64,000 nucleotides of DNA from Phaeosaccion multiseriatum (Eukaryota > Protista > Ochrophyta, other classes), in contig OZ218960.1 in NCBI GenBank assembly GCA_965112735.1, positions 682,001-746,000 of the forward strand, written 5' to 3'. The notes beneath the pieces were generated by a model. It was not told where the DNA came from. It did not search any database and saw only the letters and a program-made list of their open reading frames with translations. This document shows positions 10,521 to 62,457 of this stretch, piece after piece (position 1 is the stretch's first letter; each line of letters opens with the position of its first letter). A program made the position numbers and the translations under genes.

Positions 10521-12386
10521 GGGAGGGCAGCAAGCCAAGCAGCAAGCAAGCAGCTCAGGGAGGAGGAGGAGGAGGAGGAGGAGGAGGAGGAGGAGGAGGA
10601 GGACGAGGAGGAGGAGGAGGAGGAGGAGGAGGAGGAGGAGGAGGAGGAGCGTCCTGCGAGGGGGGTAAGGGGACATGGAACGTCTTCATCATCATCACGA
10701 CAGAGTGCAACAGTGCGCTGCAGTTGGTGATACAGCAGCGGAGCAGTCAGTACCAAGTACCCAGTACCCAGGGCCAACCCTTTCTCTCGAATAGCGTCGC
10801 ACCACAGCACCCGCTGCTCGCCTCGGTGGCCTCAGCCCTCGGCCCTCACAGGAAGGGCGTGAGCGTCGGCCCGGCCCGCGTATACATGGGTGTCGAAGAT
10901 GGTGCTACGGGAAGCCGTCGTAGGCTCTCTGTGCGCTCTCCGGCGCTCAGTGCATGGGAGTGAGGCGGCAGGCGCCCCAAAAGAGGCAGAGGAGTGTCTC
11001 GTCGGTCGACAGGGCCATTCAAGCGCTGCGGACGGACCGGTGCACGGCTGTATCACCAACTGGTCCAGTGCGGTGCGGTGCGGTGCGGTGCGGTGCGGTG
11101 TGGCGTGCTGCATGTGGCAGGGCCCAAGCCAACCTCTCCCCTCGATACATGTCAAGGAGGGAAGGAGGGGTGGCGTTATCTTCAGGACACCTCCACACAC
11201 AACAGACACGACGATACTAACGACGGTGCTGAAGACAGTGAGTGGACCGTGGACAGGGCGGGGGTTGGGCAGTGGAGTGGGTGACGGTCCCGTGAAGTCA
11301 ACTTCAAAGCAGAGCACGTGTCAACTCTCATCAGCAGAGCGAATGTGCTTGACAGTGACAGGGCATGTCATGTGCTTGACAGGGCATGTCAGCTACGTTC
11401 TCCACTCCCACAGCCCGCTTGACCGTGGCGAGGGGGGGGGGCTTCGCCCTCATGCATGTTCAGTAGGAGTGGGCAGGAGGGGCATCGAACATCACCCCTG
11501 TCAGGAGGGGCATCGGACACCACCGCTGTCGCTCACTAAAGCTGCGGTGGGACTGTGGGTGGAAGTCCTGACGGTGTGGTGCTCTGCGACTCATTGAGAG
11601 CGCCTCATCGAGGGCAGCACACACATGCAGCAAGCGGAACATGTGAGAATGAAAGTGGGCCGGACGCGCGCGCGCACACACACACACAGACAAACTGTTG
11701 CTTGGCGACCGAATCCTCCCTTCCCTTGCCTTCCCTTCCCTTCCCTTCTCTTCATTGATGCATGCATGTACTTCGTAGTACGTCGCAAGTGGACCCCTTT
11801 TCAAGTTGTCCAAAGAATCATGGCAGGACAACGAACCAACTCGGCGTAGATATAATGGACCCAGTGAAGCAACTACGTCTGATTTAAACTCTCGTTCATC
11901 GTGGCCTCTCAAGTGAGCTTTCACTCTCACTGCCACTCTCTTTCTCTCTCTCTCCTGTCTCTCTATTTACAGAACCCCGACCCCCAACAAAACACAATAG
12001 CTCAAAAGGCTTCTCAGGCGCGTGTAGAGGGAGAGCCCGATGGTCCTATTCCTCTTGCCCGGGTGGTCTTGACCACCGCTAGTACCAGCAGGTATGCAGG
12101 TATACACACTGGCCGGCCCCTGTTTGTACCCCGCCCCCCATCGCTCCCCGCTGCCCGGAGTCTGGCTGCCTTCGACTCCTTCTTGTGCTTGCACCCACCG
12201 AGCTGCCGACTCGCCTCTGGGAGCATGCCTAATGATGGCTCAACGGATGATTCCTCCTTCTCTTCCAACGGAGCCCCACCGGCCTGGATCTATCCTCGCT
12301 CTTCCCTTCGGACCAGCAGGTACGCGTGCCACAGCAGCATACAGAAGCCAACAGTGAAGACGAAGAGGTTGCCCGTAGCTGCATGC

Positions 12387-13484
12387 CTATGTGGATGGCC
12401 AATGTACTGGGAAAACCTTAGTGCTACCCTTCCCCCCTCCACTACGTGCAGCTGTCTTACTTCTTCCTGTAGTGCTCATAAAACCAGTACCGGTACGGGG
12501 GGCGGCGCCCGAGTCTATTCGAGTGAATGCCCCTCTGTAAACGAAGTAGAACACTATGAATTCCCAGCCTAGACCAGACGTTCTGAAGGGTACTAGTGCA
12601 GCAGAGGGTCGCTGACGCACCCACGTACTCATCGGATCAACGAGGGTAATGAAAGTCATGAAGGAACCTCCAACCCAGACGTTGGATGTAGCACCCAGCA
12701 CGAGCTGGCACTGCGTCTTGACCTTGCGCAAATCTGGCCCTAGCTCGGGCATCGTCTTAAGCATGCCGAGCAGGCAGGTGGTGGCAACTAGAGTAGCCCC
12801 AACGAGTGCGCTCACAACGGGCAGCATAAGGGCACACATAGTCCAGAACGTGTAGTAGCCTGGGAAAACAATCAGTACCACGCAGGATGATGTCCCTGCG
12901 AAGGCCAAAGCAGCCAAGACTGCCCAGAACCGGCTCTCCACCCAGTTCCGGAGCCGAAGAACGGTTGGTGCGCGAGACAGAAGGCTCCGCGGTAAGGCAG
13001 CAAGCCACAAACGAAGAACCAGCCATGCATTTTCCATACCACACCACATAGAGGCACAAAGAAAGCACCAGGCCATGGCGTCGTCCAGCACCCCTGACCC
13101 ACTGTAAAACCTTCCAGTACTGATGAGTATGGCTGCCATGGAGTAGAGGATGCAAAGTATTGCTCCTATCAACCTGGTTTGCGCTGCACTAGTCTTCGTC
13201 TCCTGCAGCAGTGCCTTCACGCCTCCCCTACGCCGTACATGCCTGCCGAGGATGTACACCACATCGACCAAGTGGACAGCATGGATGAGTAGATGTACCA
13301 TCTCGGGAGTATCTAGGTACGCCTTGGCAACACAAGCACTGTCTCCCACAATGTTCTTGTCGTAATACCCATCCCCACAGTCGGAGCAAATCCCTGTAGC
13401 TTCGTCGCACACGCCTTCGCTCTGGCTCGTACGGCCGAAGGTCGCGGCCGCCTCGTCGCGGCACGCCAGCACGCACGCCGACAT
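12387..13484 (-). CDS. Cys-rich ectodomain + 7TM (GPCR-like) protein, copy 1 (365 aa from MSACV)
   Basis: N-terminal EGF-like GVCDEATGICSDCGDGYY..AC followed by seven hydrophobic segments; open ORF conserved in four copies. Confidence 0.75.
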   Translation of the reverse strand: MSACVLACRDEAAATFGRTSQSEGVCDEATGICSDCGDGYYDKNIVGDSACVAKAYLDTPEMVHLLIHAVHLVDVVYILGRHVRRRGGVKALLQETKTSAAQTRLIGAILCILYSMAAILISTGRFYSGSGVLDDAMAWCFLCASMWCGMENAWLVLRLWLAALPRSLLSRAPTVLRLRNWVESRFWAVLAALAFAGTSSCVVLIVFPGYYTFWTMCALMLPVVSALVGATLVATTCLLGMLKTMPELGPDLRKVKTQCQLVLGATSNVWVGGSFMTFITLVDPMSTWVRQRPSAALVPFRTSGLGWEFIVFYFVYRGAFTRIDSGAAPRTGTGFMSTTGRSKTAARSGGGKGSTKVFPVHWPST

Positions 13485-13528
13485 GTGTCTATGTTGGAGG
13501 GAATCCTGGAGGAGAAATGCGGTAGGAA

Positions 13529-13578
13529 AGATGGCGAGTTGGTGATACAACTTCCGAAACCGTTGGCCTACGCCATCT
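13529..13578. promoter_or_regulatory. Conserved 50-bp inverted-repeat element upstream of 7TM copy 1 (also 15796-15845, 21370-21419, 23628-23677)
   Basis: Outer arms AGATGGCG/CGCCATCT and inner hairpin AGTTG-GTGATA-CAACT. It is conserved in all four copies while the immediate flanks diverge. Function is inferred. Confidence 0.5.
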
Positions 13579-14620
13579 GTGGAACAGGCAGGAAAATACA
13601 TGCGATCTGCCCTTTCGGTATGTCATGTGCTTGACAGGGCATGTCAGCTACGTTCTCCACTCCCACAGCCCGCTTGACCGTGGCGAGGGGGGCGGGGCTT
13701 CACCCTCATGCATTTCAGTAGGAGTGGGCAGGAGGGGCATCGAACATCACCCCTGTCAGGAGGGGCATCGGACACCACCGCTGTCGCTCACTAAAGCTGC
13801 GGTGGGACTGTGGGTGGAAGTCCTGACGGTGTGGTGCTCTGCGACTCATTGAGAGCGCCTCATCGAGGGCGGCACACACATGCAGCAAGCGGAACATGGC
13901 TGTGAGAATGAAAGTGGGCCGGACGCACACACACACAAACACACACACAAACTGTTGCTTGGCGACCGAATCCTCCCTTCCCTTGCCTTCCCTTCCCTTC
14001 ATTGATGCATGCATGTACTTCGGAAGTACGTCGCATGTAGACCCCTCTTCAAGTTTGCCAAAGAATCATGGCAGGACAACGAACCAACGCGGCGTACATG
14101 ACATGGATCCAATGAAGCAACTACATCTGATTAAACTCTCGTTCATCATGGCGTCTCAAGTGAGCTTTCTCTCTCACTGCCACTCTCTTTCTCTCTCCTG
14201 TCTCTCTATTTACAGAACCCCGCCCCTCAATAAGACACGATAGCTCAAAAGGCTTCTCAGGCGTGTGCAGAGGGAGAGCCCGATGGTCCTGCTCCTCTTG
14301 CCCGGGTGGTCTTGACCACCGCCAGCACCAGCAGGTATGCAAACTGGCCGGCCCCTGTTTGTACCCCGCCCCCCATCCCTCCCCGCTGCCCGGAGTCTGA
14401 CTGCCTTCGACTCCTTGTGCTTGCACCCACCGAGCGAGGGCAGCTCGCCTCGGGGAGCATGCATAATGATGGCTCAACGGATGATTCCTCCTTCTCTTCC
14501 AACGGAGCCCCACCGGCCTGGATCTATCCTCGCTCTTCCCTTCGGACCAGCAGGTACGTGTGCCACAGCAGCACACAGAAGCCAACAGTGAAGACGAAGA
14601 GGTCGCCCGTAGCTGCATGC

Positions 14621-15718
14621 CTATCTGGATGGCCAATGTACTGGGAAAACCTTAGTGCTACCCTTTCCCCCTCCACTACGTGCAGCTGTCTTACTTCTTC
14701 CTGTAGTGCTCATAAAACCAGTACCGGTACGGGGGGCGGCGGCCGAGTCGCTTCGAGTGAATGCCCGTCTGTAAATGAAGTAGAACACTATGAATTCCCA
14801 GCCCACACCGGACGCTCTGAATGGTACCATTACAGCAGAGGGTCGCTGACGCATCCACGTACTCATCGGATCAACGAGGGTGATGAAAATCATAGAGGAA
14901 GTGCCAACAAAGACGTTGGATGTAGCACCCAGCACGAGCTGGCACTGCGTCTTGACCTTGCGCAAATCTGGCCCTAGCTCGGGCATCGTCTTAAGCATGC
15001 CGAGCAGGCAGGTGGTGGCAACTAAAGTAGCCCCACCGATTGCGCTCATATAGGGCACCACAAAGGCGAGCTCAGTCCAGAACGTGTAGTAGCCTGGGAG
15101 AACAATCAGTACCACGCAGGATGATGTCCCTGCGAAGGCCATAGCAGCCAAGACTGCCCAGAACCGGCTCTCCACCCAGTTCTGAAGCCGAAGAACGGTT
15201 GGTGCGCGAGACAGAAGGCTCCGCGGTAAGGCAGCAAGCCACAAACGAAGAACCAGCCATGCATTTTCCATACCACACCACATAGAGGCACAAAGAAAGC
15301 ACCAGGCCATGGCGTCGTCCAGCACCCCTGACCCACTGTAAAACCTTCCGGTACTGATGAGTATAGCTGCCATGGAGTAGAGGATGCAAAGTATTGCTCC
15401 TATCAACCTGGTTTGCGCTGCACTAGTCTTCGTCTCCTGCAGCAGTGCCTTCACGCCTCCCCTACGCCGTACATGCCTGCCGAGGATGTACACCACATCG
15501 ACCAAGTGGACAGCATGGATGAGCAGATGTACCATCTCGGGAGTATCTAGGTACGCCTTGGCAACACAAGCACTGTCTCCCACAATGTTCTTGTCGTAAT
15601 ACCCATCCCCACAGTCGGAGCAAATCCCTGTAGCTTCGTCGCACACGCCTTCGCTCTGGCTCGTACGGCCGAATGTCGCGGCCGCCTCGTCGCGGCACGC
15701 CAGCACACACGCCGACAT
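14621..15718 (-). CDS. 7TM GPCR-like protein, copy 2 (365 aa)
   Basis: Intact ORF, near-identical to copy 1. Confidence 0.75.
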   Translation of the reverse strand: MSACVLACRDEAAATFGRTSQSEGVCDEATGICSDCGDGYYDKNIVGDSACVAKAYLDTPEMVHLLIHAVHLVDVVYILGRHVRRRGGVKALLQETKTSAAQTRLIGAILCILYSMAAILISTGRFYSGSGVLDDAMAWCFLCASMWCGMENAWLVLRLWLAALPRSLLSRAPTVLRLQNWVESRFWAVLAAMAFAGTSSCVVLIVLPGYYTFWTELAFVVPYMSAIGGATLVATTCLLGMLKTMPELGPDLRKVKTQCQLVLGATSNVFVGTSSMIFITLVDPMSTWMRQRPSAVMVPFRASGVGWEFIVFYFIYRRAFTRSDSAAAPRTGTGFMSTTGRSKTAARSGGGKGSTKVFPVHWPSR

Positions 15719-15954
15719 GTGTCTATGTTCGAGGGAATCTCCTCCTGAGGAGAATATAGATTAGAAAAAGAATAAATACACACAGTGGGGTGGAAAGATG
15801 GCGAGTTGGTGATACAACTTCCGAAACCGTTGGCCTACGCCATCTGTGGGACGGAGGCAATTTATACTTACAGGCCTTCCGCACAAATATAACTAAAGCG
15901 CGGTCTCTTGGAGTACCCCTTATGAGCAGCCCAACAATTCTCTTCGTACGCTTA

Positions 15955-16440
15955 ATCACTCGCTCACCCCACTCCAGCTACTCACTCGCTCACTCACTCA
16001 TGCACCCACCCACCCACCCACCCACCCACCCACCCCCCCCTCACTCACTCACTCACTCACTCGCACGCACACATTCACACACACAAACACACACAGACAG
16101 ACACACACATACACTCACTCATTCACTCACTCACTATACCCTACACACTCACTCACGCACTCACTCATTCACTCACTCATTCACTCACTCATTCACTCAC
16201 TCATGCACTCACTCACTCACTCAGTCCCTCACTCATGCACTCACTCACTCACTCATTCACTCATGAAATCACTCAATCTCACTCAATCACTCACTCACTC
16301 ACTCACTCACTCACTGGCGCACTCACTAACTCATTCACCCCCCCTCGCACACCGCCTCACTGCCTCACAGACGCACAAGCAGCATGCTCTCTCATTCACG
16401 AACTCACTCACTCGCTCGCTAAATCACTCACCGCTCCATC
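15955..16440. repeat. (CACT)n/(CACC)n compound microsatellite, duplicated at ~23735-24240
   Basis: Visible low-complexity tract. Confidence 0.9.
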
Positions 16441-17982
16441 ACACACACCAACGCAAACACACACATGGTACGATCTGTCAAGTACGCTGGGTGGTTTCGC
16501 CAAAGTGCCTGTCAGATTCTGTAACGTTTGAATGAGGGTGGTTCCTTTGCACGTACAATACAATAATTCCCTAACCAGCCTACGTCTTCCTCTGAGTCAA
16601 AGACATCATGGCCCCCACCATGCTGTGCCTCTGCGGTTCTGTCTCTACTGGTGCCAAGCTGTGTCGATGCGCAGATGAGAGGCACGAAAACCAGGAGCGG
16701 TGGCTGGCTCGCTCGTCTGGCGGCAGCAGTGGCTCGAGTAAGAAGAAGAGCAGCTCCAGTAGGTCGGGTAAGAAGACTGTCTGTCTCTGCGAGTGTCAGC
16801 GGGAGCTCTGGTAGCAATTCGAGTGGGCGTAGTGGAAGGTCGGGCGGTGGTGATTCTTCCTCTTCGGGTCTTGACTGCGGAATGGATGGAACAGAAGGAG
16901 GTGAGAAGGCTCTGAGCTAGACAGATGTATTAGGACGTGCTTGCCGCTACAGAACACTCAGGTGTCGCCCCTTCCTCTCCGGCAGCAAGCGCCATGACTG
17001 ATGGCTCCAGCACATGGTGTCGGACTCGACAAACCCGTTTCCTCCACCCGCTCTTCTCTTGCTACCCTTTTTTTCCCTGTTTGGGTGTGACTAGGTTTCT
17101 GGTTGGGTATGACTAGGCTTTGGGTATTTTCTCCTCGCTCGTGCGACCCTCGACGCTCATCATCTGAATCGCCTGTGTCCTGCCATCTGTGACCGTATGT
17201 GACACTCAGGGACAGCAGATTGAGAGCGCCTCATCGAGGGCGGCACACACATGCAGCAAGCGGCGGAACATGTGAGAATGAAAGTGGGCCGGACCCGCGC
17301 GCGCACACACACACAGACGAACTGTTGCTTGGCGACCGAATCCTCCCTTCCCTTGCCTTCCCTTCCCTTCATTGATGCATGCATGTACTTCGGAAGTACG
17401 TCGCAAGTGGACCCCTGTCAAGTTTGCCAAAGAATCATGGCAGGACAACGAATCAACGCGGCGTACATGACATGGATCCAATGAAGCAACTACGTCTGAT
17501 TAAACTCTCGTTCATCGTGGCGTCTCAAGTGAGCTTTCTCTCTCACTGCCACTCTCTCTCTCTCCTGTCTCTCTATTTACAGAACCCCGCCCCTCAATAA
17601 GACACGATAGCTCAAAAGGCTTCTCAGGCGTGTGCAGAGGGAGAGCGTGATCCTGCTCCTCTTGCCCGGGTGGTCTTGACCACCGCCAGCACCAGCAGGT
17701 ATACATACTGGCCGGCCCCTGTTTGTACCCCGCCCCCCATCCCTCCCCGCTGCCCGGAGTCTGACTGCCTTCGACTCCTTGTGCTTGCACCCACCGAGCT
17801 GCCGACTCGCCTCGGGGAGCATGCATAATGATGGCTCAACGGATGATTCCTCCTTCTCTTCCAACGGAGCCCCAGCGGCCTGGATCTATCCTCGCTGTTC
17901 CCTTCGGACCAGCAGGTACGTGTGCCACAGCAGCATACAGAAGCCAACAGTGAAGACGAAGAGGTCGCCCGTAGCTGCATGC

Positions 17983-19074
17983 CTATCTGGATGGCCAATG
18001 TACTGGGAAAACCTTAGTGCTGCCCTTTCCCCCTCCACTACGTGCAGCTAGCAGGTGTACTGTGCTCATATGTCTAATACCGGAACCGGGGGCGGTGGAG
18101 TCTATTCGAGTGAATGCCCGTTTGTAAACGAAGTAGAACACTGTGAGTTCCCAGCCCAGACCGAACGCTCTGAACGGTACCATTACAGCAGAGGGTCGCT
18201 GACGCATCCACGTACTCATCGGATCAACGAGGGTGAGGAAAGTCATAGAGAAAGTGCCAACACAGATACTAGATGTAGCACCTAGCACGAGCTGGCACTG
18301 CGTCTTGACTTTGCGCAAATCTGGCCCTAGCTCGGGCATCGTCTTAAGCATGCCAAGTAGGCAGGTGGTGGCAACTACAATAGCCCCACCGATTGCGCTC
18401 ATGAAGGGCAGCACAAGGGCGAACTCAGTCCAGAACGTGTAGTAGCCTGGGAGAACAATCAGTACCACGCAGGATGATGTCCCTGCGAAGGCCAAAGCAG
18501 CCAAGACTGCCCAGAACCGGCTCTCCACCCAGTTCCGGAGCCGAAGAACGGTTGGTGCGCGAGACAGAAGGCCCCGCGGTAAGGCAGCAAGCCACAGACG
18601 AAGAACCAGCCATGCATTTCCCGTGCCAAACCACATAGCGGCACAAACAAAGCACCACCAGGCAATGGCGTCGTCCAGTACCCCTGACCCACTGTAGAAC
18701 CTTCCGGTACAGATGAGTATAGCTGTCGTGGTGTAGAGGATGCAAAGCATTGCTCCTATCAACCTGGTTTGCGGTACACCTATCTTCATCTCTTGCGGCA
18801 GTGCCTTCACGCCTCCCCTACGCCGTACATACCTGCCGAGGGTGTACACCACATCGACCAAGTGGACAGCATAGATGAGCAGAAGTACCATCTCGGGAGC
18901 ATCTAGGTACGCCTTGGCAACACAGGCACTCTCTCCCACAATGTTCTTGTCGTAATATCCATCCCCACAGTCGGAGCAAATCCCTGTAGCTTCGTCGCAC
19001 ACGCCTTCGCTCTGGCTCGTACGGCCGAAGGTCGCGGCCGCCTCGTCGCGGCACGCCAGCACGCACGCCGACAT
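17983..19074 (-). CDS. 7TM GPCR-like protein, copy 3 (363 aa, most divergent)
   Basis: Intact ORF with in-frame indels relative to the other copies. Confidence 0.75.
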   Translation of the reverse strand: MSACVLACRDEAAATFGRTSQSEGVCDEATGICSDCGDGYYDKNIVGESACVAKAYLDAPEMVLLLIYAVHLVDVVYTLGRYVRRRGGVKALPQEMKIGVPQTRLIGAMLCILYTTTAILICTGRFYSGSGVLDDAIAWWCFVCAAMWFGTGNAWLVLRLWLAALPRGLLSRAPTVLRLRNWVESRFWAVLAALAFAGTSSCVVLIVLPGYYTFWTEFALVLPFMSAIGGAIVVATTCLLGMLKTMPELGPDLRKVKTQCQLVLGATSSICVGTFSMTFLTLVDPMSTWMRQRPSAVMVPFRAFGLGWELTVFYFVYKRAFTRIDSTAPGSGIRHMSTVHLLAARSGGGKGSTKVFPVHWPSR

Positions 19075-19113
19075 GTGTCTATGTTGGAGGGAATCCTGGA
19101 GGAGAAAGGCGGT

Positions 19114-21354
19114 CTAAATATATTACACCCTTAAGTGCCATCTATGGTTGTCTAAAAGTAATGTCTCACCGCCCCGGGGAACTTAGCCCTCGAGGTCGTG
19201 TCCCTCTGACTCATCAGTTCTTCCCATTGGAACAAAGTTGATACCAGCCAGGATCCTGTGGCGAACCGATCGTTCGTGTCGGGCCCGCTGGAGCGCTACG
19301 GCTAATCGTCGCCGAATGACGCAAACAGCTCTCGCAGAAGCCCTCAGGTCCAGATGTTCGTGCCCCCCAGCCATGTGGGTGGCGAGTGTTTTCAGAAACA
19401 TCTGAGCAGAAGGACCAAATGCGCCTTGCTGTTCTATTGCAAAAGGGACAAGGTGGTACCGCGTGGGGTCATAGTGGATGTCCCCACCCTGGCCTTCCAT
19501 GCCTACCTGTGGCACCCCATACCTGGTCCGCTTGGTCGCTTCAGCCTTCTTGGCTGCCGCGAGTGCCTCCTTCGATGCCTTGGCCCGGTTGGTGGTGTTG
19601 GTGGCATCTGTGAGCGTGACGTCGATCATGAGGGACTTGTGGCCGTCGCCATATTCATGATCGGACGGAAGCTCAAACATCCTGGGGGGAGTCACGATGT
19701 CCATCTCCATCTGCTTGGCCACGTGGGCGTCACTCCTCACGGCGTTGCTCCCCCCTCTCCCTCGTCGCGGGGTGACCGTTCTTGCCCTCATGAAGAAGGG
19801 GAAGCCGGTGTTCTGGACGATCCCTCTGCCCAGGCCCTGGCTCTTCAGCAGGGTGACAAGTGCCTTCTGCACAGCGTCGTGTTGGGGTGTGCTGAGCCCC
19901 GTCTTGGTGCAGGTGACGATGTGCCCCTCCGTCAGCGCCTTGCCAGAGCACTTATGACAGTCCTTGCTGTAGGTGGGGTCAAAGCCAAGTCTTCGCCGAA
20001 TGGCACTCTTGTGCTCGGCGTCGGTAAGGTGGAGTGCTCCCCCTGTTGTCGTGGTCGGCTGAAGGTGGAGCCACGCACCAGCACCCTTCACGCTGTGGCT
20101 GAGGGCTCTGGCCAGGTACTTCTCCCGTTGGTCTTGCTGTGGGATGGCTTTCAATAGTTCCAAGAAGTCTGCCCTCGCCTTCGACGTGAGGAGCTTGGTG
20201 TAACGCTTCTGGGCGCCTCGCCTCTCTCCGTGTCGGCTGTGTGGAATGGAGGGTCCTCCCTCGTCCAACATCTTGGTTTCCTCTGTGCGCCAGCGTGGCC
20301 GGCCGCCCTCATCATCGTCATCACCACCGCCTGGTTCCACGTCCTGCTCATCCTCCGGGGCTGCATCACTTCCGCCATCTGGGTCTTCGTCACTTTCACC
20401 CTGTGGGTCTTCATCACTCCCCCCCCCTGGGTCTGCCTCGCTGTCAGAGGTTGGTCCATCTGCGGTCCCCTGCTGCCCTGCAGCCGCGTCGCCCCCTTCC
20501 GCACCCACCCCAGGGTGTATCACTACGGCCCCAACATTGTCCTCTTCGCTTAAGTCTGCTCCTTTACCCCCAGATTGTGTCTCATCCCCCCCGGGGGCAT
20601 CACTCGCAGCCGGCTGGTCCCCTCTGCCACCGACAGGTGTGTGCCCTTCATGCTCTGGGGTGTCGTCTCTCTCCGGGAAGAGCGTGGTGATCAGCCCTGG
20701 CTCTCTCCATCTGTTGTCACTGAGGTGGGAGATGATTGGCGCCGCGCTGTACAGGGATGCTGTGATTGCCCATGGGGGGAGGTCACAGTATGTGGGCCCG
20801 AGCGCCCCTGGCAGCAAGCCCCCCCCCTTGGGGAGGAGAAGGGCCTCCGGTCTGCTGATGTGGCCGTGGGCGAGCAACACAGCCCATCCTCGCGGGAGGG
20901 ACTTGAGGAAGCGCTCCTGTTGACTGAGAGCACCTTGGGCTGCGTCTGCCTTGGGCGCGCTGGGGAGTTGGTCAAAGACACGTGCTGCCGTGTGGATGAC
21001 ACGGATATGGTATCCGTTGGGTCCCTGCCCACACTGGGACAGGGCCTGTCTGCTCCGCGGTCCCACCTCCCTGAGGGCGAAGGGGAGGGCTTGCATCGCC
21101 CCTGCCAGGAAGGCTGCGTCACAGAGCTCAGCTTGGGGGACGAGTCCCAAGCCCCCATCGCCCACCTTCAGTCTCGCCTGTCTCGCTCGCAGCTCATCAC
21201 CCATGAGGGGGAGCATCCGGAAGGTGTCACTGCCCCTCTGCAGTGCCCTCTCCTCTTGCGCAGCCTTGTGGGCCTGTAGGATGGCCGTAACCGAGGTGCG
21301 CCCTGGATCCAGGGAATTGGTTGCTGTGTAGCCCACAAGGGTATCGAAGAGGGT
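19114..21354 (-). mobile_element. 5'-truncated non-LTR retrotransposon with restriction-like endonuclease (CRE-clade-like); 10-bp TSD GAAAGGCGGT at 19104-19113 and 21355-21364
   Basis: ORF 19183-21336 is open up to the 5' junction. It has the RT-thumb motif RLKVGDGGLGL, CCHC finger CHKC-x8-H-x3-C followed by QHD, and RLE motifs MDIV / IDVT / AEATKRTRY / VPFAIEQQG. There is no YxDD core. An empty site is visible in copy 1 (GGAGAAATGCGGTAGGAAAG). Confidence 0.9.
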
Positions 21355-22464
21355 GAAAGGCGGTAGGAAAGATGGCGAGTTGGTGATACAACTTCCGAAA
21401 CCGTTGGCCTACGCCATCTGTGGAACAGGCAGGAAAATACATGCGATCTGCCCTTTCGGTATGTCATGTGCTTGACAGGGCATGTCAGCTACGTTCTCCA
21501 CTCCCACAGCCCGCTTGACCGTGGCGAGGGGGGCGGTGCTTCACCCTCATGCATGTTCAGTAGGAGTGGGCAGGAGGGGCATCGAACATCACCCCTGTCA
21601 GGAGGGGCATCGGATATCGGATACCACCTCTGTCGCTCACTAAAGCTGCGGTGGGACTGTGGGTGGAAGTCCTGACGGTGTGGTGCTCTGCGACTCATTG
21701 AGAGCGCCTCATCGAGGGCGGCACACACATGCAGCCAGCGGCGGAACATGTGAGAATGAAAGTGGGCCGGACGCGCGCGCACACACACACACACAAACTG
21801 TTGCTTGGCGACCGAATCCTCCCTTCCCTTGCCTTCCCTTCCCTTCATTGATGCATGCATGTACTTCGGAAGTACGTCGCATGTAGACCCCTCTTCAAGT
21901 TTGCCAAAGAATCATGGCAGGACAACGAACCAACTCGGCGTAGATATAATGGATCCAATGAAGCAACTACATCTGATTAAACTCTCGTTCATCGTGGCGT
22001 CTCAAGTGAGCTTTCTCTCTCACTGCCACTCTCTTTCTCTCTCCTGTCTCTCTATTTACAGAACCCCGCCCCTCAATAAGACACGATAGCTCAAAAGGCT
22101 TCTCAGGCGTGTGCAGAGGGAGAGCCCGATGGTCCTGCTCCTCTTGCCCGGGTGGTCTTGACCACCGCCAGCACCAGCAGGTATGCAAACTGGCCGGCCC
22201 CTGTTTGTACCCCGCCCCCCATCCCTCCCCGCTGCCCGGAGTCTGACTGCCTTCGACTCCTTGTGCTTGCACCCACCGAGCTGCCGACTCGCCTCGGGGA
22301 GCATGCATAATGATGGCTCAACGGATGATTCCTCCTTCTCTTCCAACGGAGCCCCACCGGCCTGGATCTATCCTCGCTCTTCCCTTCGGACCAGCAGGTA
22401 CGTGTGCCACAGCAGCATACAGAAGCCAACAGTGAAGACGAAGAGGTTGCCCGTAGCTGCACGC

Positions 22465-23562
22465 CTATGTGGATGGCCAATGTACTGGGAAAACCTTAGT
22501 GCTGCCCTTTCCCCCTCCACTACGTGCAGGTGTCTTACTTCTTCCTGTAGTGCTCATAAAACCAGTACCGGTACGGGGGGCGGCGGCCGAGTCGCTTCGA
22601 GTGAATGCCCGTCTGTAAATGAAGTAGAACACTATGAATTCCCAGCCCACACCGAACGCTCTGAACGGTACCATTACAGCAGAGGGTCGCTGACGCATCC
22701 ACGTACTCATCGGATCAACGAGGGTAATGAAAGTCATCGAGGGAGTTCCAAAACAGACATTGCATGTAGCACCCAGCACGAGATGGCACTGCGTCTTGAC
22801 CTTGCGCAAATCTGGCCCTAGCTCGGGCATCGTCTTAAGCATGCCGAGCAGGCAGGTGGTGGCAACTATAGTAGCCCCACCGAGTGCGCTCATAAAGGGC
22901 AGTATAAGGGCGAGCTCAGTCCAGAACGTGTAGTAGCCTGGGAGAACAATCAGTACCACGCAGGATGATGTCCCTGCGAAGGCCAAAGCAGCCAAGACTG
23001 CCCAGAACCGGCTCTCCACCCAGTTCTGAAGCCGAAGAACGGTTGGTGCGCGAGACAGAAGGCTCCGCGGTAAGGCAGCAAGCCACAAACGAAGAACCAG
23101 CCATGCATTTCCCGTGGCAAACCACATAGCGGCACAAAGAAAGCACCAGGCCATGGCGTCGTCCAGCACCCCTGACCCACTGTAAAACCTTCCGGTACTG
23201 ATGAGTATAGCTGTCGTGGTGTAGAGGATGCAAAGTATTGCTCCTATCAACCTGGTTTGCGCTGCACTAGTCTTCGTCTCCTGCAGCAGTGCCTTCACGC
23301 CTCCCCTACGCCGTACATGCCTGCCGAGGATGTACACCACATCGACCAAGTGGACAGCATGGATGAGCAGATGTACCATCTCGGGAGTATCTAGGTACGC
23401 CTTGGCAACACAAGCACTGTCTCCCACAATGTTCTTGTCGTAATATCCATCCCCACAGTCGGAGCAAATCCCTGTAGCTTCGTCGCACACGCCTTCGCTC
23501 TGGCTCGTACGGCCGAAAGTCGCGGCCGCCTCGTCGCGGCACGCCAGCACACACGCCGACAT
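22465..23562 (-). CDS. 7TM GPCR-like protein, copy 4 (365 aa from MSACV)
   Basis: Intact ORF, a mosaic of copy 2-like and copy 3-like segments. Confidence 0.75.
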   Translation of the reverse strand: MSACVLACRDEAAATFGRTSQSEGVCDEATGICSDCGDGYYDKNIVGDSACVAKAYLDTPEMVHLLIHAVHLVDVVYILGRHVRRRGGVKALLQETKTSAAQTRLIGAILCILYTTTAILISTGRFYSGSGVLDDAMAWCFLCAAMWFATGNAWLVLRLWLAALPRSLLSRAPTVLRLQNWVESRFWAVLAALAFAGTSSCVVLIVLPGYYTFWTELALILPFMSALGGATIVATTCLLGMLKTMPELGPDLRKVKTQCHLVLGATCNVCFGTPSMTFITLVDPMSTWMRQRPSAVMVPFRAFGVGWEFIVFYFIYRRAFTRSDSAAAPRTGTGFMSTTGRSKTPARSGGGKGSTKVFPVHWPST

Positions 23563-24949
23563 GTGTCTATGCTGGAGGGAATCCTGGAGGAGAATATAGA
23601 TAATAGAGAGGGCGGAAAGGGGAGGAAATATGGCGAGTTGGTGATACAACTTCCGAAACCGCTGGCCTGCGCCATCTGTGGGACGGAGGCAATTCATACT
23701 TACAGGCACAAATATAAATAAAACCACCCTTAATCACTCGCTCACCCCACTCCAGCTACTCACTCGCTCACTCACTCATGCACCCACCCACCCACCCACC
23801 CACCCACCCCCCCCTCACTCACTCACTCACTCACTCGCACGCACACATTCACACGCACAAACACACACAGACAGACACACACACATACACTCACTCACCC
23901 CTCACTCACTATATCCTACGCACTCACTCACGCACTCACTCATTCACTCACTCATTCACTCACTCATTCACTCACTCATGTACTCACTCACTCACTCACT
24001 CACTCACTCATGCACTCACTCACTCACTCACTCGCTCACTATACCCTACGCACTCACTCCAGCTACTCACTCACTCACTCACACACACTCACTCACTCAC
24101 TCACTCACTCACTGGCGCACTCACTAACTCATTCACCCCCCCTCGCTCACCGCCTCACTGCCTCACAGACGCACAAGCAGCATGCTCTCTCATTCACGAA
24201 CTCACTCACTCGCTCGCTAAATCACTCACCGCTCCCTCACACACGCAAACGCAAACACACATATGGTACGATATGTCAAGTACGCTGGGTGGTTTGCCAA
24301 AGTGCCTGTCAGATTCTGTAACGTTTGAATGAGGGTGGTTCCTTTGCACGTACAATACAATAATTCCCTAACCAGCCTACGTCTTCCTCTGAGTCAAAGA
24401 CATCATGGCCCCCACCATGCTGTGCCTCTGCCGGTTTGTCTCTACTGGTGCCAAGCTGTGTCGATGCGCAGATGAGAGGCACGAAAACCAGGAGCGGTGG
24501 CTGGCTCGCTCGTCTGGCGGCAGCAGTGGCTCGAGTAAGAAGAAGAGCAGCTGCAGTAGGTCGGGTAAGAAGACTGTCTGTCTCTGCAAGTTCAGCGGGA
24601 GCTCTGGTAACAATTCGAGTGGGCGTAGTGGAAGGTCGGGCGGTGGTGATTCTTCCTCTTTTGGGTCTTGACTGCGGAATGGATGGAACAGAAGGAGGTG
24701 AGAAGGCTCTTAGCTAGACAGATGTATTAGGAAGTGCTTGGCGCTACAGAAAACTCAGGTGTCGCCCCTTCCTCTCCGGCAGCAAGCGCCATGACTGATG
24801 GCTCCAGCACATGGTGTCGGACTCGACAAACCCGTTTCCTCCACCCGCTCTTCTCCTCGCTCGTGCGACCCCCCAACACTCATCATCTTGCATCCCCTCT
24901 CTCCTGCCATCTGTGACCGTATGTCTGAAGCTCATACTCATCCTCGTCA

Positions 24950-27793
24950 TCATGTGTATACGTTCCACACGAGTATGTTCCCATCCTCCCCCGCCGTGAC
25001 GATCTGTCTCCCGTCGGGGCTAAACTTGACCCCCCTGATGGTGTTTGAGTGTCCCTTCCCGGTGGCCACTTGTCTTGCCGTTTCAAAGTCCCACAGCCGT
25101 AGAGCCTTGCCTGTGCCGCCCGTCGCAAAGAGCTGAGGACGCCGCTCGGCCCGCCCCTGACTCCGTCCCGTCCCCTCTCCAGCCCCCTCCTCGCCCTCCT
25201 CCTCGCTCCCTTGGACCCCCCCCCCTCCTCCTCCTCCTCCTTCTCCTCCCTCTCCCTCTCCGGTGTCAATGTCCAAACACAGCGCCTCGTCGCTCATGTC
25301 GTCCGTCAAATCCCGAACAGTGGTCGGGTTGTGTTCTCGAAGGTCCCAATAGTTGACTCTCTTCTCCTGCCCCACTGTAATCACCGTGGTTTGATCGCGA
25401 CTCAAGGCCACGGCGTTGATGCCCCCCATGCGTTGCGAGTGATTGCTAACTTGCTTCTCCGTGCGAAGGTTCCAACAGATGAGTGTGCGGTCTCGAGAGG
25501 CGGACAAGGCGTGCACGTCGTCGCCAAACAGCGCGATGGATGGCACTCTCTGTCCGTGCTGTTTGAGATGGGTGATGAGGTCTCTGGACCGTAACTCCCA
25601 CACGCGAAGTTCCCCCTCCTGCCCTCCCGACATAATGTAACGCTCGTTGCCGCTCAGCACGATTGACGTAACGCCTGGGGGGAGAGGAGTGATGATGGTG
25701 GAGAAGGTGGGGGGGGGGGGGGGCGAAGCAGGAGTTAAGCGGGAGTGCAACGACAGCGAAAAAAAGAGCGAGGTCTTTGGAGGGGGGGGTTGGGTGGCAA
25801 AGACCAAAAGGTAAGGGTGGCGAGGAGGGTGGTTGTGTGGGTGTGTGGGTGTGTGCGTGCGCGTGCAAAAGGGGAGGTAGTTTTCCAGTGTTCGGCAGAA
25901 GGAGGGGGAGACTCGGCGATTATCATCCAACCGTTCTGATGGGCGTTATCGATGGTCCACAGCAGATGGCCACTATCCACGTCATGTGCCCGTATGTTGC
26001 CGTCCGTCCACCCCGAGATCAACATGTCCAGGGTCATGAGCAGGCAGGCAGGCGCGCCTGCATCCCTCACGAGTGCCTGCGTTACCACGGTATAGTCCCC
26101 TGCGTCCCAGATGCGCAGGGTGCAGTCGGTGGAGGACGTGGCGAAGCGGTCGGAGCAGTTGCGGGCGTAGGCCACGGCCGTCACGGGGCCGAAGTGGTTC
26201 TGGCTCACCTGTTTGTTTAGGTTTGTTTGGGTTTTGTTTGTTTCTGTTGGAGGCAGCAGGTAAATTGATTGGCTAGTGCAGCTCCTCTTGACTCTCTCCT
26301 CCTCCCTCCCTCCCTCCCTCCCTCATGACTTAGTGACTAAGTGAGTGCTAAGGCAATGAATAGCTGACTGAGTGCGTGTAAGTCAACTGAAGAACTGAGT
26401 GACGACTCACCACGAGCGAGGCCATGGTCTCAACGCGCACTCTGTAGATGAAGCCCAGGTCTGTGCCAGCAACCACCTGTGCATTTCGTGCGTTTCGTGC
26501 GTTTCGTGTGTTGCGTTGGTTGATGAGTGCGTCAATGAAGAGTGTGCGTTAGTCAGATTTTGGTCAAGGCTCCTGCTCTACCCAGCAGAGCAGACCTGCT
26601 TCTTACTTCTCGCATCAATAAGCAGGGCGGGTCACAAACAAAGCGTGTAATGCACTTCCAGACCGGGCCAGCGGTGTGAACAAACAGATAAAACACAAAC
26701 CCCGGACATACACACCCACACACACACCCACGCGCACACACACCCACACACACACGCACACACACACACACACACGCACACACGCACGCACACGCACCTC
26801 CATGCGGTCTGGTGAGAAGGACATGCCCACGACGGCCCCCTTGAGGCGGCTCTGAGCGGTGTCCTGCATGGTAGTGGCCCCAAAGGCAGTGACCGTGCCG
26901 TCCCCGCCTCCGCAGATGACGCCCTCGGGCCAGCAGAGGAGGCTGTGCACGCCGAGACTGCAGGCACGCACCACCCGCTGACCGAGAAGGTTGGTCTTGA
27001 CGATGCCGAGGATGAAGTCTCCCGTGGTGGTGGCTGCGAAGACTGTCTCTTTGTCGTCGCTGAAGGCGATGGCGGTGATCTGACGGACAGCAGCGCCCCT
27101 ACCCTCGTGCATCATGCGCTCTCCCCGCATCTCACCCGTGAAGGGGTTGAGGGCCCAGAGACAAACGTCATTGTGCCCCGCGGTGGCGAGGAGGTAGTCT
27201 GCGGTGTCTCTCCGCTTGACGTTCTTGACGAAGCCGCCCCAGCAGGCCGTGACCACCGGAGCGGGGTTGTGTTGTGCGATGGTGACGATGAAACCGTTGG
27301 ACATGTCCCACACGAGGATCTTGCGATCCTGCTCTACACCCACCGTCACGAGCAGCTTCTCGTCGTCGCTAAAGGCCACCGCCCCGACCCCGTAGTCATG
27401 CTCGGCCAATCTGTAGAGCAGTCGCTTGCTGGCAAAGTCCCACACGATGGCGTCCGCGTTCTCCCCGTGCTGCCCCGACGCGATGAGCGCCCCGGACTTG
27501 CTAAGGGCCAGGCAGGTGATGTTAGCGTCGTGTCCGTGCAACAGGACCTGTTGGTGCGCGTCGTTGAAGTCACAGATGGCAACTGTGCCCCCCGCCGCCA
27601 CGACAAAGTCCTTGCCGTTGGGGTGGTAGAATGGCCCCCCTCCTGTGCACGAGTACCCAATCGCGTGCTCCAGCTCGAGCTGGGGCCCTATCGCCGCTTC
27701 ATCTTCGTAGCCCCCCCCGCCTCTTGACTTGTCTTCGCTGCTCCGATTTGTGGCTCCTGCAGCGTCCTTCTCTTCCCCGTTCCGAAAAGACAT
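24950..27793 (-). CDS. CFAP52: WD40-repeat cilia/flagella-associated protein (CFAP52/WDR16-like); exons 27793-26798, 26476-26411, 26208-25932, 25674-24950
   Basis: LELEHAIGY N-terminus, QVLLHGHDANITCLALSKSGALIASGQ, LISGWTDGNIRA..LLWTIDNAH, GHSNTIRGVKFSPDGRQIVTAGEDGNILVW; phase-compatible GT-AG introns. Confidence 0.8.
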
Positions 27794-28675: not shown

Positions 28676-29647
28676 TTGCAGTTGGGCGAGGTACTCCGGC
28701 TGGTGCTTGGGTACGTGGGAGATGGGCACTTTGGCTTTGTAGGCGGGGTGAGCACCGAGTGGCGGGCCCACTACACCGCCTTGTATCCCGCTTCAACCAC
28801 CTTTGGGTCTGTCGTCAGCTCTGCGGAGCGCCTCCGCTGGGCGAGAAGCCGGGGCCTTCCGCTGTCCAAGTTGCTCTTTCGACACGGGGCCCGGGCGGGC
28901 GATGTGGACACATGCGTCGCTCTCCATGGCATGGGCTGTCCCTGGGACGGAGGAGCGTGTGAGTCCACCGTGCAGAATGGGCGGCACGGTCTGAGTGTTC
29001 TCCAATGGCTGCGCTCCGAAGCTCTGCCCGAGAAAGAGCGCTGCCCGTGGTACCCCAATCTCATCTGCGGACGTGCTGCGGGCGCCGGACACCTCGCCAT
29101 CTTGGAGTGGCTCCTGCACGACGATTGGGAGGAAGGCGGTCCGCCGCCTTGCCGCACAGACACGCTATCCTGGATGTACGCTTGCGAGGGAGGAAACGTG
29201 CACGTGGTGCACTTCCTGCTCAATCATCCCCGTACGAGGAGAGTCGTGCCTGGGCCTGGACCTGCCTCTATGCCTATGTCGCGTCAAGGTGCTGTGGACT
29301 GGCGGCACCGACCTTTCGGGGCCTACTGGGGCGCGGCCTACGCAGCTGCTCACTTCGGCCACCACGAGCTGCTGCGCTATCTACACGCCAAGGCTCGCCA
29401 TTTGTGCTTTTGGAACGAGACTGTGTGCCAGGCTGCGGTCGCCAATGCCCGGAGCCTCGCCATGTTGAAGTGGCTTCGATCCGAGGGTGTTCAGTGTCCG
29501 TGGGACGAACGGTGCTGCCCCCAGGTCATTAGGGACAGCAAGTGGAGGGGAAGGTATGACGAGAAGTGGACAATCGATGAAGAGCTGTTTCAGGAGATCA
29601 AGGAGTGGGTCCATGCCAATGGGCACCCCTGTGACTGCCCGGACTGA
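28676..29647 (+). CDS. Ankyrin-like 'GCPWD' repeat protein; true start may be ATG 28590 if the G10 run at 28641-28650 carries an indel
   Basis: Repeated LQWLR..CPW, AAGAGHLAILEWL, AAHFGHHELLRYL motifs; F-box-like N-terminal V..EWR segment. Confidence 0.75.
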   Translation: MQLGEVLRLVLGYVGDGHFGFVGGVSTEWRAHYTALYPASTTFGSVVSSAERLRWARSRGLPLSKLLFRHGARAGDVDTCVALHGMGCPWDGGACESTVQNGRHGLSVLQWLRSEALPEKERCPWYPNLICGRAAGAGHLAILEWLLHDDWEEGGPPPCRTDTLSWMYACEGGNVHVVHFLLNHPRTRRVVPGPGPASMPMSRQGAVDWRHRPFGAYWGAAYAAAHFGHHELLRYLHAKARHLCFWNETVCQAAVANARSLAMLKWLRSEGVQCPWDERCCPQVIRDSKWRGRYDEKWTIDEELFQEIKEWVHANGHPCDCPD

Positions 29648-29892: not shown

Positions 29893-32800
29893 TTAGCCCC
29901 CCTTCGCCCCCTTCGTCCCCCCTTGGGCCCTCTCCCGGTCCTTGATGGCCCTATACTGCGAGAAGCTGAGCCTCTCAGTGAGGCACTCGAAGCGCCAAAG
30001 ACGCAGGGAGCTCTGCACGTGAGGGTCACTCCAGGCCTGCTGCGCGTGTTGGTAGCCCGCCCTGTGAATGAGCTGCTGGAGGATGTCCCGCTTGCTGCTG
30101 TGGCGGAAGGTGTCGGGGAACACACTCCCCCTGTACACCTCTCCCTTCTCGTCCTGGGGCAGGCCGGTGTGGGGGCGTGTGAGTGCGTGGGTGGGCGCGT
30201 GCGAACAAGGGGGGTCGGGAGGGGATGGAGAGGAGGGGGGCGGCACAGAGAAGGCCAGCATTGACGTCAGAGGCCAGAGCAGCAGTGGTGCGTACGTCAG
30301 AGACCAGACCAGAGAGGAGACCTTTCACGCAGTTTTACAGAGCCTTACGTAGAGCCTGACGTCACGTAAACACAAACATAACATAACATAACATAACATA
30401 TCGTAACAGTTACGTTAAGTTACGTACCTGGAACTCCCCCAGCAGTCCGTGCTGTGCGGGGTTGAAGTCGTGAGGCTGCATGGCCCTCTCCAGGCCCCTG
30501 ACCACAAGCACCTTGCAGCGGGTCAGGGGCAGCTGAGCAGCCAGCAGGGGGGAGAAGGAGGAGGCGGAGGCGGAGGGGGAGGGGGAGGAGGAGGAGGAGG
30601 AGAAGGGGGCGCCCATGCTGCCTAGCCTTCCCCAACTGCCTCCTCCTCCTCCTCCTCCTCCTCTTCCGTCGTCGTCACCATCTGTGGCGGCGTTGACGGC
30701 ATACTCGAGGAGAGCCGCGCGGAGGGGCCGCGGGGTGAAGCTGCCCGCGAATCCCGACACCCGATACTTGCTGCCCTTGCTGCTGCCCTTGCGGCTGCCC
30801 TTTTCGAGGGTTTCCCAACGCACAAACAGCGCGGTTGGCGGGTCGGTGTTGTGCCCCAGAGTAGAAAACGAGGCGGCGGCGGAGGAAGAAACGGAGGAAG
30901 AGGAGGCGGCGGTGGAGAAGAGGGAGGACGACGGCGAGGACGACACCAAGCAAGGTGCCGGCGCCGTGTTGGCTCTCTGTCTGCGGCCGATGTGCTGGCT
31001 GACCTCTCTGGCGCTCCAACCCCCCTCGAAGTGCAGCATCAGCGCGTCAAAGGCCTGCAGGCAGAGGCCCCCCTGGGGCCAGAGCCTGAGCATCCCCGGC
31101 CCAAGGGTCGGTGTTGCTGTTGGCGTTGGTGGAGAGGTCTCCTGCTGCTGTGGGCCGAGCGCACGGGGAGGGGCGGATGGAGCCATCACCGGCAGCCGCT
31201 CGTACCACTCCTGCTGCCACCACCACCTCTGCTCTCGCATCACCAACTGCTGCTGCTGCACTTCCTCTACCACGGGCTCCGCCGCTGTTTCGTTGCGCAT
31301 GCCATTTGCGTGACCCATTCCCATGCGTAGAGAGACTTCTCCGTCCTCTCTGCTCTCTGGCCCTCCGTCCGTCCCCTTTCTCTCTATGCTCCCTCGCGCG
31401 TAGCCCTCGACAGGCAAATCGCTTGCGCTAGACAAGACCCCCTTCTCCCTCTGCTGCTGCTGCTGCTCCTCCTCCTCCTCGTCGTCGTCGTCCTCCTCAC
31501 CCTGCTCCTCGTCCTCCTCCTCTTCTTTTTTCTCCTTGTCTTGCTGCTGCTCCGGCTCAGCTTGTAACGGTAGAAGCGCAGGACCTTCCGCTGCCCCTAA
31601 CGACGGTCTTCGATACGCTCGGCCGCCCCCCTCCCCCTCCCCCCCCTCCCATCTGTTGCCAACTCCAACTTCCCTGTCGCCCTCGCCATCGCCCTCGCCG
31701 CGGAGAGAAGCGCCTTCGCCTATCTGCGCCGTCTCTTGCTGTCCTCCCCTTCTCTGCACCTCCACCTCTCCCTCCTCCCCGCCCCTCTCCCCTTCCTCCT
31801 CCTCCTCCTCCTGCTGCTGCTCCTCCTCCTCCTCCTCCCCCTCCTCTTCGTCGTCGTCGCCCTGATTGTTCGCCGTTTCAAGAGCTGTCGGACAAACCAC
31901 TGCTTCTCTCGTGTCCTTCCTTTCCCAACAAGCAGCGGCCTCGATGCATGAGGATAGGGGTGTAGGAGCACCAGCAGCATCGAAGCACGATGATGGGTGC
32001 GGGACAGCAGGACCCCCACCCTTCACTTTACGCACGATTGTTTGCCCCATCCCCTCCATGGGTATGCCCGCAGTAAGGCTACTTGCGCAGCTCCAGGGCC
32101 CCCCTCCCTCTCCCCCTCCTCGTCCTACCGCAGCTGCTCGTGTGTCCCCCATGTCCCTCTCGAAAGATGCTCCTCCTACTCCCTCCCCTACCCTCCTAAC
32201 CCCTCCATCGGACGGCGCCGTGCGACACCTTCTTCGCTGTCCTCCTCCTCCTCCTCCTCCTCCTCCTCCTCCTCCTCCGTCTCTACCTCTTGCTGCGGAT
32301 GCCCTTGATGTACGCAATAACGTGTTGGATGGGCGGCTGTGCATGGCATAGATGCAACTGATGTCCTCAACATGCGCGGCCCCTCCCCAGTCATTCTCGG
32401 GCACACCGCGCTGCCTCACGGGGTCCCTGCTGTACATCCACCACTCGGCCTGTTTCTGCCCCTGTCCTCTCCGGCGGGAGGAGCTCTGGCGTTCCTCACC
32501 CCGGTGCTTCCCTTTTCTGTCTTTTCTCTTCATGCTCTTGCCACCACTCCTGCCCTGTTCGCTCTCTCTCTGACTTGCCGCCTTGCTGCCCCTACTACTG
32601 CCGTGGCGAGCAGACCCACCTAACGCCGTCGAGGGGCGACCGACATAGGCGGCCTTCGAAGTGCCAGCAGGACGGGGCACAAGCAGACGGCAGGTGGCGG
32701 TCGGGGGCCGAGTCACCGCGCCCACCAAAGAGGGCCACGAGGAAGAGGCTCCGTACGGACTATGCGTGGTAGCGCCGCTACCTCTGGTGGTACCCGGGTA

Positions 32801-33349
32801 GGCGGGGCGTGGACGACTTGTCGAAGCGAACCCGCCCTGTCTGTTCCGCCGGATCCGCCTCCTCTGTGTTACGGCACCTACTGGGCGATGCCCGTCGGCA
32901 ATGTGATCCACAAAGAGGAGACTTTTGTTGTCGTCGTCATCTTCCTCATTGTCGTGAATTTGACCCTTCCATTTGCCTCCACCGAGCGTGAGAAGCTTCT
33001 TCTCCTTGGCTCTCTCCTTGTCCTCCTGCCTCTGCTTCTCCTCCTCTCGCCTTTGTGTATCCCTTCTCCTCGCCGCCTCCTCCTCCTCTCGTCGCTTCTG
33101 CTCCCGCTGGCGCTGCATCTCCTCCTCCTCCTCCTGCTTCAGCTTCTTTTCCTTGTCCTCCTCCTCTTTCTCTTTCTCCTTCTCCTCCTTGGCCGCCCCG
33201 ATGGATGAGGCAATCGTGTTTCCTCCAGAGACAGCGACATCGCTTCCGTCTCCGTCTCGCCGCCCCCCCTCCACTCTCGCAGGTAGGCCCTTGGCCTTGG
33301 GTTTGTCCCCCTCAGAGTCGAAGAGACGGCGCAGCCTCGAAAGCACCAT
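29893..33349 (-). CDS. Long low-complexity protein with a divergent C-terminal AMMECR1 domain; exons 33349-30428 and 30153-29893
   Basis: ALFVRW, G.F...LR..LLEYA, FSPL...QLP...CKV, HDF....HGL..EF, then LI.RAGY..LRLWRF....LSFSQY parallel AMMECR1; donor CAG|GTACGT at 30427, acceptor at 30154. Confidence 0.7.
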
Positions 33350-33470
33350 CGAGGAAGGCGAGTCCTCGATCGAGGGGGGCCGCCCTAAAAGTAACGCCAG
33401 CCGCCATCGGAGAGGTTGGCGTAGATGGCAACGAACGATATCCATAGATGGCAATCGTTTGTGCGGTTGA

Positions 33471-40002: not shown

Positions 40003-40042
<40 letters not shown>

Positions 40043-40046
40043 CGGC

Positions 40047-40090
<44 letters not shown>

Positions 40091-40319
40091 CGGCAGATAG
40101 ACAGACAGGCAGATAGACAGACAGACGGATAGACAGACAGGCAGATAGACAGATAGACAGACAGACAGACAGACAGACAAGACAGACAGACAGACACATA
40201 GACAGACAGACAGACAGATAGACAGACGTACAGATAGATAGACAGACAGACAGACACATAGACAGACAGATAGACAGACAGACAGACACATAGACAGACA
40301 GATAGACAGACAGATAGAC

Positions 40320-40357
<38 letters not shown>

Positions 40358-40418
40358 GCAGACAGACGTACAGATAGATAGACGGACAGAAGACAGACAG
40401 ATAGACAGACAGACAGGC

Positions 40419-40483
<65 letters not shown>

Positions 40484-40511
40484 GGCAGATAGACAAGACA
40501 GACAGACAGAC

Positions 40512-40596
<85 letters not shown>

Positions 40597-40620
40597 CACA
40601 GACAGACAGATAGACAAGAC

Positions 40621-40676
<56 letters not shown>

Positions 40677-40710
40677 GTACAGACAGACAGACAGACAGAC
40701 AGACAGACGT

Positions 40711-40775
<65 letters not shown>

Positions 40776-62414: not shown

Positions 62415-62457
<43 letters not shown>

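Follow-up and report, generated by a model that had tools for sequence, protein, structure and literature searches.

Among seven-transmembrane (7TM) proteins, THH1/TOM1/TOM3 (PF06454), GPR137 and PRRT3 have been handled as families resembling G protein-coupled receptors (GPCRs) (PMC12716839, PMC11195488). The RSF (Remi-sans-famille) GPCRs form an orphan 7TM family with a weak link to TOM1 and a short extra helix between transmembrane helices 6 and 7 (TM6 and TM7) (PMC12716839). For tandem paralogues the published precedent is that of the primate red/green opsins, where a peak of divergence under gene conversion is a signature of selected sites (PMC3924837). Here we describe a tandem array of four genes in a 64,000-nucleotide stretch of Phaeosaccion multiseriatum DNA (contig OZ218960.1, positions 682,001 to 746,000; this whole stretch is called the window). 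These genes are most likely paralogues in an unnamed family of ochrophyte membrane proteins with a predicted GPCR fold, and most likely receptors. Divergence among the four is concentrated in TM5 and TM6, and this concentration looks non-neutral. As in the opsins, conversion has made tandem 7TM paralogues alike while divergence peaks at a few helix sites; the four genes differ from the opsins in showing at least four states rather than two, and there is no sequence relation between the systems.

The array comprises four intact, intronless open reading frames (ORFs) on the minus strand, all opening at a common MSACV methionine and 83-93% identical in pairwise protein comparison. Its layout is as follows.

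12387-13484, minus strand: copy A, ORF of 365 aa with an EGF-like cap and 7TM region
14621-15718, minus strand: copy B, 365 aa; the copy modelled as a GPCR-like seven-helix bundle
17983-19074, minus strand: copy C, 363 aa; the most diverged copy, with three in-frame indels
22465-23562, minus strand: copy D, 365 aa
13511-17058, unstranded: doublet block with copy B and the DNA upstream of it; 93% identity to 21352-24855
21352-24855, unstranded: partner doublet block with copy D and the DNA upstream of it; 93% identity to 13511-17058
15980-16338, unstranded: (ACTC)n array upstream of copy B, with a counterpart at 23758-24136 upstream of copy D
11593-12386, minus strand: non-coding 3' flank common to the copies (coordinates of copy A); divergence 3-6%

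Because the two doublet blocks are 93% identical, the array is a duplicated two-gene unit, giving the pairs (D,C) and (B,A), which are joined near 17219. An assembly artefact was rejected: the copies are 7-17% apart, and contigs from public runs span the stretch. We likewise rejected an array of pseudogenes, given the intact frames and purifying selection on the cap; stops number 0 among at least 128 substitutions (P ∼0.02 if neutral), and every indel keeps the frame. A longer N-terminus was also discarded, since the in-frame upstream ATG, at 13601, is confined to copy A and the relatives in Tribonema minus (see below) begin at the same methionine. A preliminary description, made from the sequence alone, had reported four intact ORFs of 363-365 aa; the lengths and the shared start bear this out, and the TM3, TM5 and TM6 strings that it quoted are all exact.

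Where the copies differ was mapped along the gene, with the following features.

15545-15718, minus strand: six-cysteine EGF-like N-terminal cap, residues 1-58 of copy B (omega ∼0.05)
15266-15376, minus strand: TM2-TM3 tract, alignment codons 115-152 (copy B), with A=B and C=D; conversion tract
15023-15073, minus strand: TM5 divergence island, copy B residues 216-232
12789-12839, 18376-18426 and 22867-22917, minus strand: TM5 island in copies A, C and D
14882-14920, minus strand: TM6 divergence island, copy B residues 267-279
12648-12686, 18235-18273 and 22726-22764, minus strand: TM6 island in copies A, C and D

Only the TM5 and TM6 stretches differ in every pair. All six pairs are apart by 14-27% of bases over TM5 residues 216-232 and by 21-33% over TM6 residues 267-279; outside the islands the gene diverges by 1.8-7.5%, and the 3' flank (11593-12386 for copy A), which served as the non-coding yardstick, by 3-6%. 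The three-state sites, six out of six, lie within these two stretches. Among copies A, B and D, a single 60-nucleotide window contains 15 variable bases, a count that none of 2000 shuffles reached. Changes in TM5 are mostly non-synonymous, as its codon-by-codon comparison in the preliminary description had indicated (per-pair means of 8.2 non-synonymous vs 2.3 synonymous); in TM6 synonymous changes are high as well (pS 0.196), and the TM6 synonymous tree is the deepest among regions.

The rest of the protein is much more uniform. Over the 58 residues of the ectodomain there is a single amino-acid difference; TM4 likewise has one, in residues 184-206, with a second, F/L207, just beyond, so the near-identity claimed for both was correct. 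The claim that most loops are alike stood in part: loop 3 is invariant in sequence, whereas intracellular loop 1 differs strongly. So does the C-tail, and nearly all differences in these two parts and in TM1 are private to copy C. The end of TM3 is invariant too, and is conserved with Tribonema. TM2 and TM3 had been described as hypervariable along with TM5 and TM6, and here the description failed: their differences nearly all belong to the single two-state tract at codons 115-152, which is not hypervariability. Informative sites change partners along the gene, with the grouping A,B vs C,D clear at those codons; the ancestry of the copies is a mosaic.

The islands were picked after viewing the data, and hence were tested by a window scan. 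Neutral simulations combined mutation and gene conversion, and were run both with and without sequence imported from distant donors. No more than 3% of runs produced a window as extreme as TM6, and no more than 1% produced two; where the donors were 15-30% divergent, both islands appeared in at most 0.4%. Whole-gene pN/pS is 0.82. The cap is under purifying selection (omega ∼0.05, p=0.001), and omega is ∼1 across the membrane part and C-tail. An omega of ∼1 is what one would look for if evolution there were neutral or relaxed, with young redundant copies drifting and the islands being chance imports from distant paralogues at lipid-facing positions. The high synonymous divergence of TM6 and the placement of TM5 variation on the hydrophobic face of the helix fit that account, as do the more diverged paralogue pieces present in the same sample and the state of copy C, whose private changes are many and whose start lies 30 bases from a retrotransposon inserted upstream. 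We nonetheless think it unlikely: the donor-import simulations rarely give both islands, the frames are intact, and TM4 and TM1, where lipid faces are expected too, hardly vary among A, B and D.

Six cysteines of the N-terminal cap are present in all four copies and in Tribonema. No signal peptide was found on the cap, and an EGF_2 Pfam match occurs only in one Tribonema protein, where it is weak (E 0.007, below cut-off); an Atlas cluster bearing EGF_2 scores 0.94 by language-model features. The better AlphaFold model, built from a six-sequence input (mean predicted local distance difference test score, pLDDT, 56), has seven long helices and a small stranded cap. The helices span residues 54-85, 99-128, 135-162, 173-206, 213-243, 250-281 and 293-321, with an extra short helix at 285-291, and the hydropathy profile also gives seven membrane helices. 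Lysine and arginine counts are 5, 3 and 4 in the inner loops and 1, 0 and 2 in the outer loops. This positive-inside pattern, together with the six-cysteine cap, leads to a predicted topology with the N-terminus outside and the C-terminus inside.

Structure searches with the better model returned GPCR-like folds. In Foldseek the top 50 rows were all GPCRs, with E values only 5e-3 to 5e-2. Exhaustive structure alignment gave best Z scores of 15.3-15.6 (for Z 15.3, root-mean-square deviation 4.3 with 236 residues aligned), and its top 50 rows were all 7TM GPCR-like folds, spread across classes and including AdipoR2, LYCHOS and TMEM87A. A shape search matched a GPR143 cluster at a TM-score of 0.54. 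By language-model features, unnamed and EGF_2-bearing eukaryotic clusters scored 0.93-0.95; the 7TM clusters of TOM1, GPR137 and PRRT3 were weaker (0.82-0.89, where 0.9 is the threshold for a lead). The proteins thus likely have a GPCR-like seven-helix fold with an extracellular cysteine-rich cap, without an assignable class. The 7TM GPCR fold that the preliminary description had put forward is on this modelling likely, not secure.

A 7TM fold can also belong to something other than a receptor, namely an enzyme, a channel or an organelle membrane protein (as PAQR/AdipoR, TMEM87A or GPR137), in which case the islands would tune a substrate site. AdipoR2, LYCHOS and TMEM87A come within ∼2 Z of the best GPCR, a HlyIII cluster tops the Atlas shape search, and the array proteins have neither a GPCR class motif nor a Pfam match. 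The N-out topology with a disulfide cap speaks against this account, being opposite to that of PAQR proteins, and no metal-binding histidine cluster was seen conserved with Tribonema. Among the named look-alikes GPR137 is lysosomal (PMC12716839); on the other side, most GPCR pathway parts are present in heterokonts (PMC3971589). On balance we regard a non-receptor role as quite improbable.

Relatives proved scarce. The 7TM protein had no Pfam match even at E 10, the models of GPCR classes A, B, C, F, cAMP and Ste2 included, nor a match in a sequence search of the PDB. Word-based homologue searches found nothing new, and a metagenome scan no relative. HMMER, run exhaustively against 1.84 billion proteins, yielded two matches (E 5e-9 and 2e-6), both hypothetical proteins from one contig of Tribonema minus (KAG5177583.1 and KAG5177565.1). 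These genes, compared exon by exon or as database proteins, are collinear with ours from the cap to TM7, share the Met-x-Cys start and the six-cysteine EGF-like cap, conserve the ends of TM3 and TM6 and the TM5 proline, and likewise form a small paralogue cluster on one contig. They differ in being intron-rich, in having a longer loop 3, and in sequence, identity being only ∼30%. The one close Tribonema pair shows 74% and 80% identity in its TM5 and TM6 exons vs 69% and 68% in its TM1-3 and TM7 exons; TM5 and TM6 exons are therefore no more divergent there than the others. We noted a third, unannotated Tribonema paralogue at 18647-23517 (plus strand) of its locus, beside one of the two proteins; it is broken, its first exon carrying a frameshift and its TM7 exon a stop codon.

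Further paralogues exist, as contigs of public DNA runs include pieces 10-20% diverged from copy B, some with TM6 codons absent from all four copies. The nearest named clusters, for the membrane part, are those of THH1/TOM1/TOM3, GPR137 and PRRT3 (features 0.87-0.89). There is no hmmscan match to THH1/TOM1/TOM3 or GPR137, and GPR137 has no extra domain, unlike the capped array proteins. The short helix at 285-291 in the array model resembles that of RSF; the RSF motif NxLQxxMNxL is absent here, and RSF proteins lack an additional domain. By the tests run, the array proteins fall outside the named GPCR classes, TOM1/GPR137 and RSF. We found no account of this EGF-cap 7TM family in the literature. 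The family's undescribed status, as proposed from the first reading of the array, agrees with the empty Pfam and PDB sequence searches.

Variable sites in TM5 lie on one face of the helical wheel (periodicity p=0.04), opposite a conserved face of small residues, and include E/M216 and G/V228. Variation in TM6 is on all faces and takes in polar sites, for example N268, which is common to Tribonema. One way to account for the TM5 arrangement is selection on a protein-protein surface: the outward TM5/TM6 face would bind a partner or a protein from a parasite or virus, or else pair with another copy (a choice of dimer), with the copies diverging to escape or to avoid cross-pairing. The variable TM5 residues are large, hydrophobic and on one face, as such a surface would be, and the nearest named look-alike, THH1/TOM1/TOM3, includes a plant factor needed for tobamovirus multiplication, going by a title cited in PMC12716839. 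An arms race with an outside protein is at odds with the near-invariance of the most exposed part, the cap and outer loops (omega ∼0.05), and the TM6 variation covers all faces; the TOM1 likeness, below 0.9, is a lead only. We judge this account distinctly unlikely.

The reading we put first, at about even probability, is that the four genes are chemoreceptor-like paralogues, homogenised by conversion, in which selection preserves distinct TM5 and TM6 stretches that set the ligand. After duplication of a two-gene unit, gene conversion would hold most of the sequence alike, while selection would discard conversions that erased the outer-to-middle stretches of TM5 and TM6; each copy would retain its own version of these, with linked synonymous differences carried along. 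A small ligand may bind in or beside the outer half of the helix bundle, at TM5 and TM6, under the fixed disulfide cap, and the two stretches would decide which small ligand binds. The invariant cap, TM4, TM3 end and loop 3 would retain a common folding and signalling interface, and the shared cytoplasmic face would relay the signal, perhaps to a G protein. Judged by sequence, the invariant loop 3 and conserved end of TM3 would suit a shared cytoplasmic partner. The pattern suggests, without proof, that each copy senses a different molecule.

Several results weigh against this chemoreceptor reading. Confidence is low in both structure models (pLDDT 56 and 50). The second has six helices, with TM7 unformed (pLDDT ∼28 there), and gives mixed matches at Z ∼10, a weak support for the GPCR fold. 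Helical bundles reach Z scores not far below 13-15 by chance. The variable face of TM5 is its hydrophobic face, only 17 degrees from the hydrophobic moment. Such variation usually means exposure to lipid, and the pocket location put forward for the variable residues is conjectural. The lean of the variable sites to the outer membrane half is not significant (p=0.09-0.14). We looked for RNA runs holding the stretch and found none. The simulations were simple and assumed a uniform mutation rate. As to positive selection, site models on one tree gave a class with omega near 5 (M8 v M8a, p=3e-4, four sequences), but were set aside because the ancestry is mosaic; with regional trees, M1a v M2a gave p=0.20. 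No region has omega significantly >1, with TM5 at ∼2 (0.75-6) and TM6 at ∼0.75. From these regional values the islands are old sequence kept apart or imported, and fast evolution is not demonstrated. The rapid diversification and the dN/dS above 1 that had been expected of the array are thus not borne out, the latter being significant with one tree only.

What stands of the proposed diversifying chemosensory family is the GPCR-like fold with its cysteine-rich cap, the flagellated host, the lack of a named family and the concentration of differences in TM5 and TM6; the regional-tree dN/dS and the TM2/TM3 differences do not fit it, and the recognition of mates, prey or viruses proposed with it is conjecture. 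A broader form of the chemoreceptor reading would make the array one cluster of a large undescribed ochrophyte chemoreceptor repertoire, with TM5/TM6 cassettes swapped on a fixed scaffold and hydrophobic cues (pheromones, oxylipins, prey signals) as ligands, an algal counterpart of the smell and taste receptor arrays of animals. We hold it to be rather doubtful.

Other features of the window, immediately around the array and farther away, are these.

19104-21364, minus strand: 5'-truncated non-LTR (non-long terminal repeat) retrotransposon with a CCHC knuckle and RLE-type (restriction-like) endonuclease motifs
13525-13580, 15790-15845, 21372-21422 and 23626-23680, minus strand: conserved 50-base upstream element
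24950-27793, minus strand: multi-exon WD40 gene, CFAP52-related, directly upstream of the array
3469-4311, plus strand: class III aminotransferase coding piece (domain match)
28676-29647, plus strand: ankyrin-repeat coding piece (domain match)
35276-36364, plus strand: ubiquitin-like coding piece (domain match)
59070-61082, minus strand: 670-codon ORF matching pyridine nucleotide-disulphide oxidoreductase PF13738

All four copies have the 50-base element upstream, conserved between stretches of DNA that differ; its folding does not beat that of shuffled sequences (z -1.4 to -0.4; the stem is possibly clipped for two of the copies). Some 21 bases before the start codon there is a run of pyrimidines that ends in CAG (about 13505-13520, minus strand, and at the same place in the other copies). 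It resembles a splice acceptor, and a 5' untranslated region intron may lie upstream of the ORFs. The retrotransposon has an ORF of 717 codons (21336-19183) and is flanked by a 10-bp target-site duplication (19104-19113 and 21355-21364). Sitting 30 bases upstream of the copy C start, it parts that copy from its upstream element. Its family was assigned by motifs alone, with no Pfam match, and no second copy was found within the window.

Chrysoparadoxa, Triparma, Aureococcus and brown algae supply the best named relatives of the WD40 gene; weaker ones are named CFAP52. A flagellated protist had been suggested as the host, and this ochrophyte-like neighbour, with weaker relatives named after a flagellar gene, agrees. 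The doublet duplication copied DNA just beyond the end of the WD40 gene. For two long ORFs, at 61292-63673 (plus strand, 793 codons) and 30410-33454 (minus strand, 1014 codons), Pfam gave nothing above cut-off. An (ACAG)n array of 214 copies at 39973-40830 is the longest simple repeat in the window.

Literature searches, in which most subscription papers were not covered, found neither expanded diversifying GPCR-like arrays in ochrophyte algae nor an identified algal pheromone receptor. If the copies have diverged by neutral drift, the array is a young cluster of an ordinary kind in an orphan 7TM family. If they are receptors, they are four natural variants, ∼30 helix residues apart on a fixed scaffold, and make a ready test set, in which exchange of two short stretches should shift ligand specificity. 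In its evolution this unnamed ochrophyte EGF-cap 7TM family shows a pattern already known from the chemoreceptor and opsin arrays of animals.

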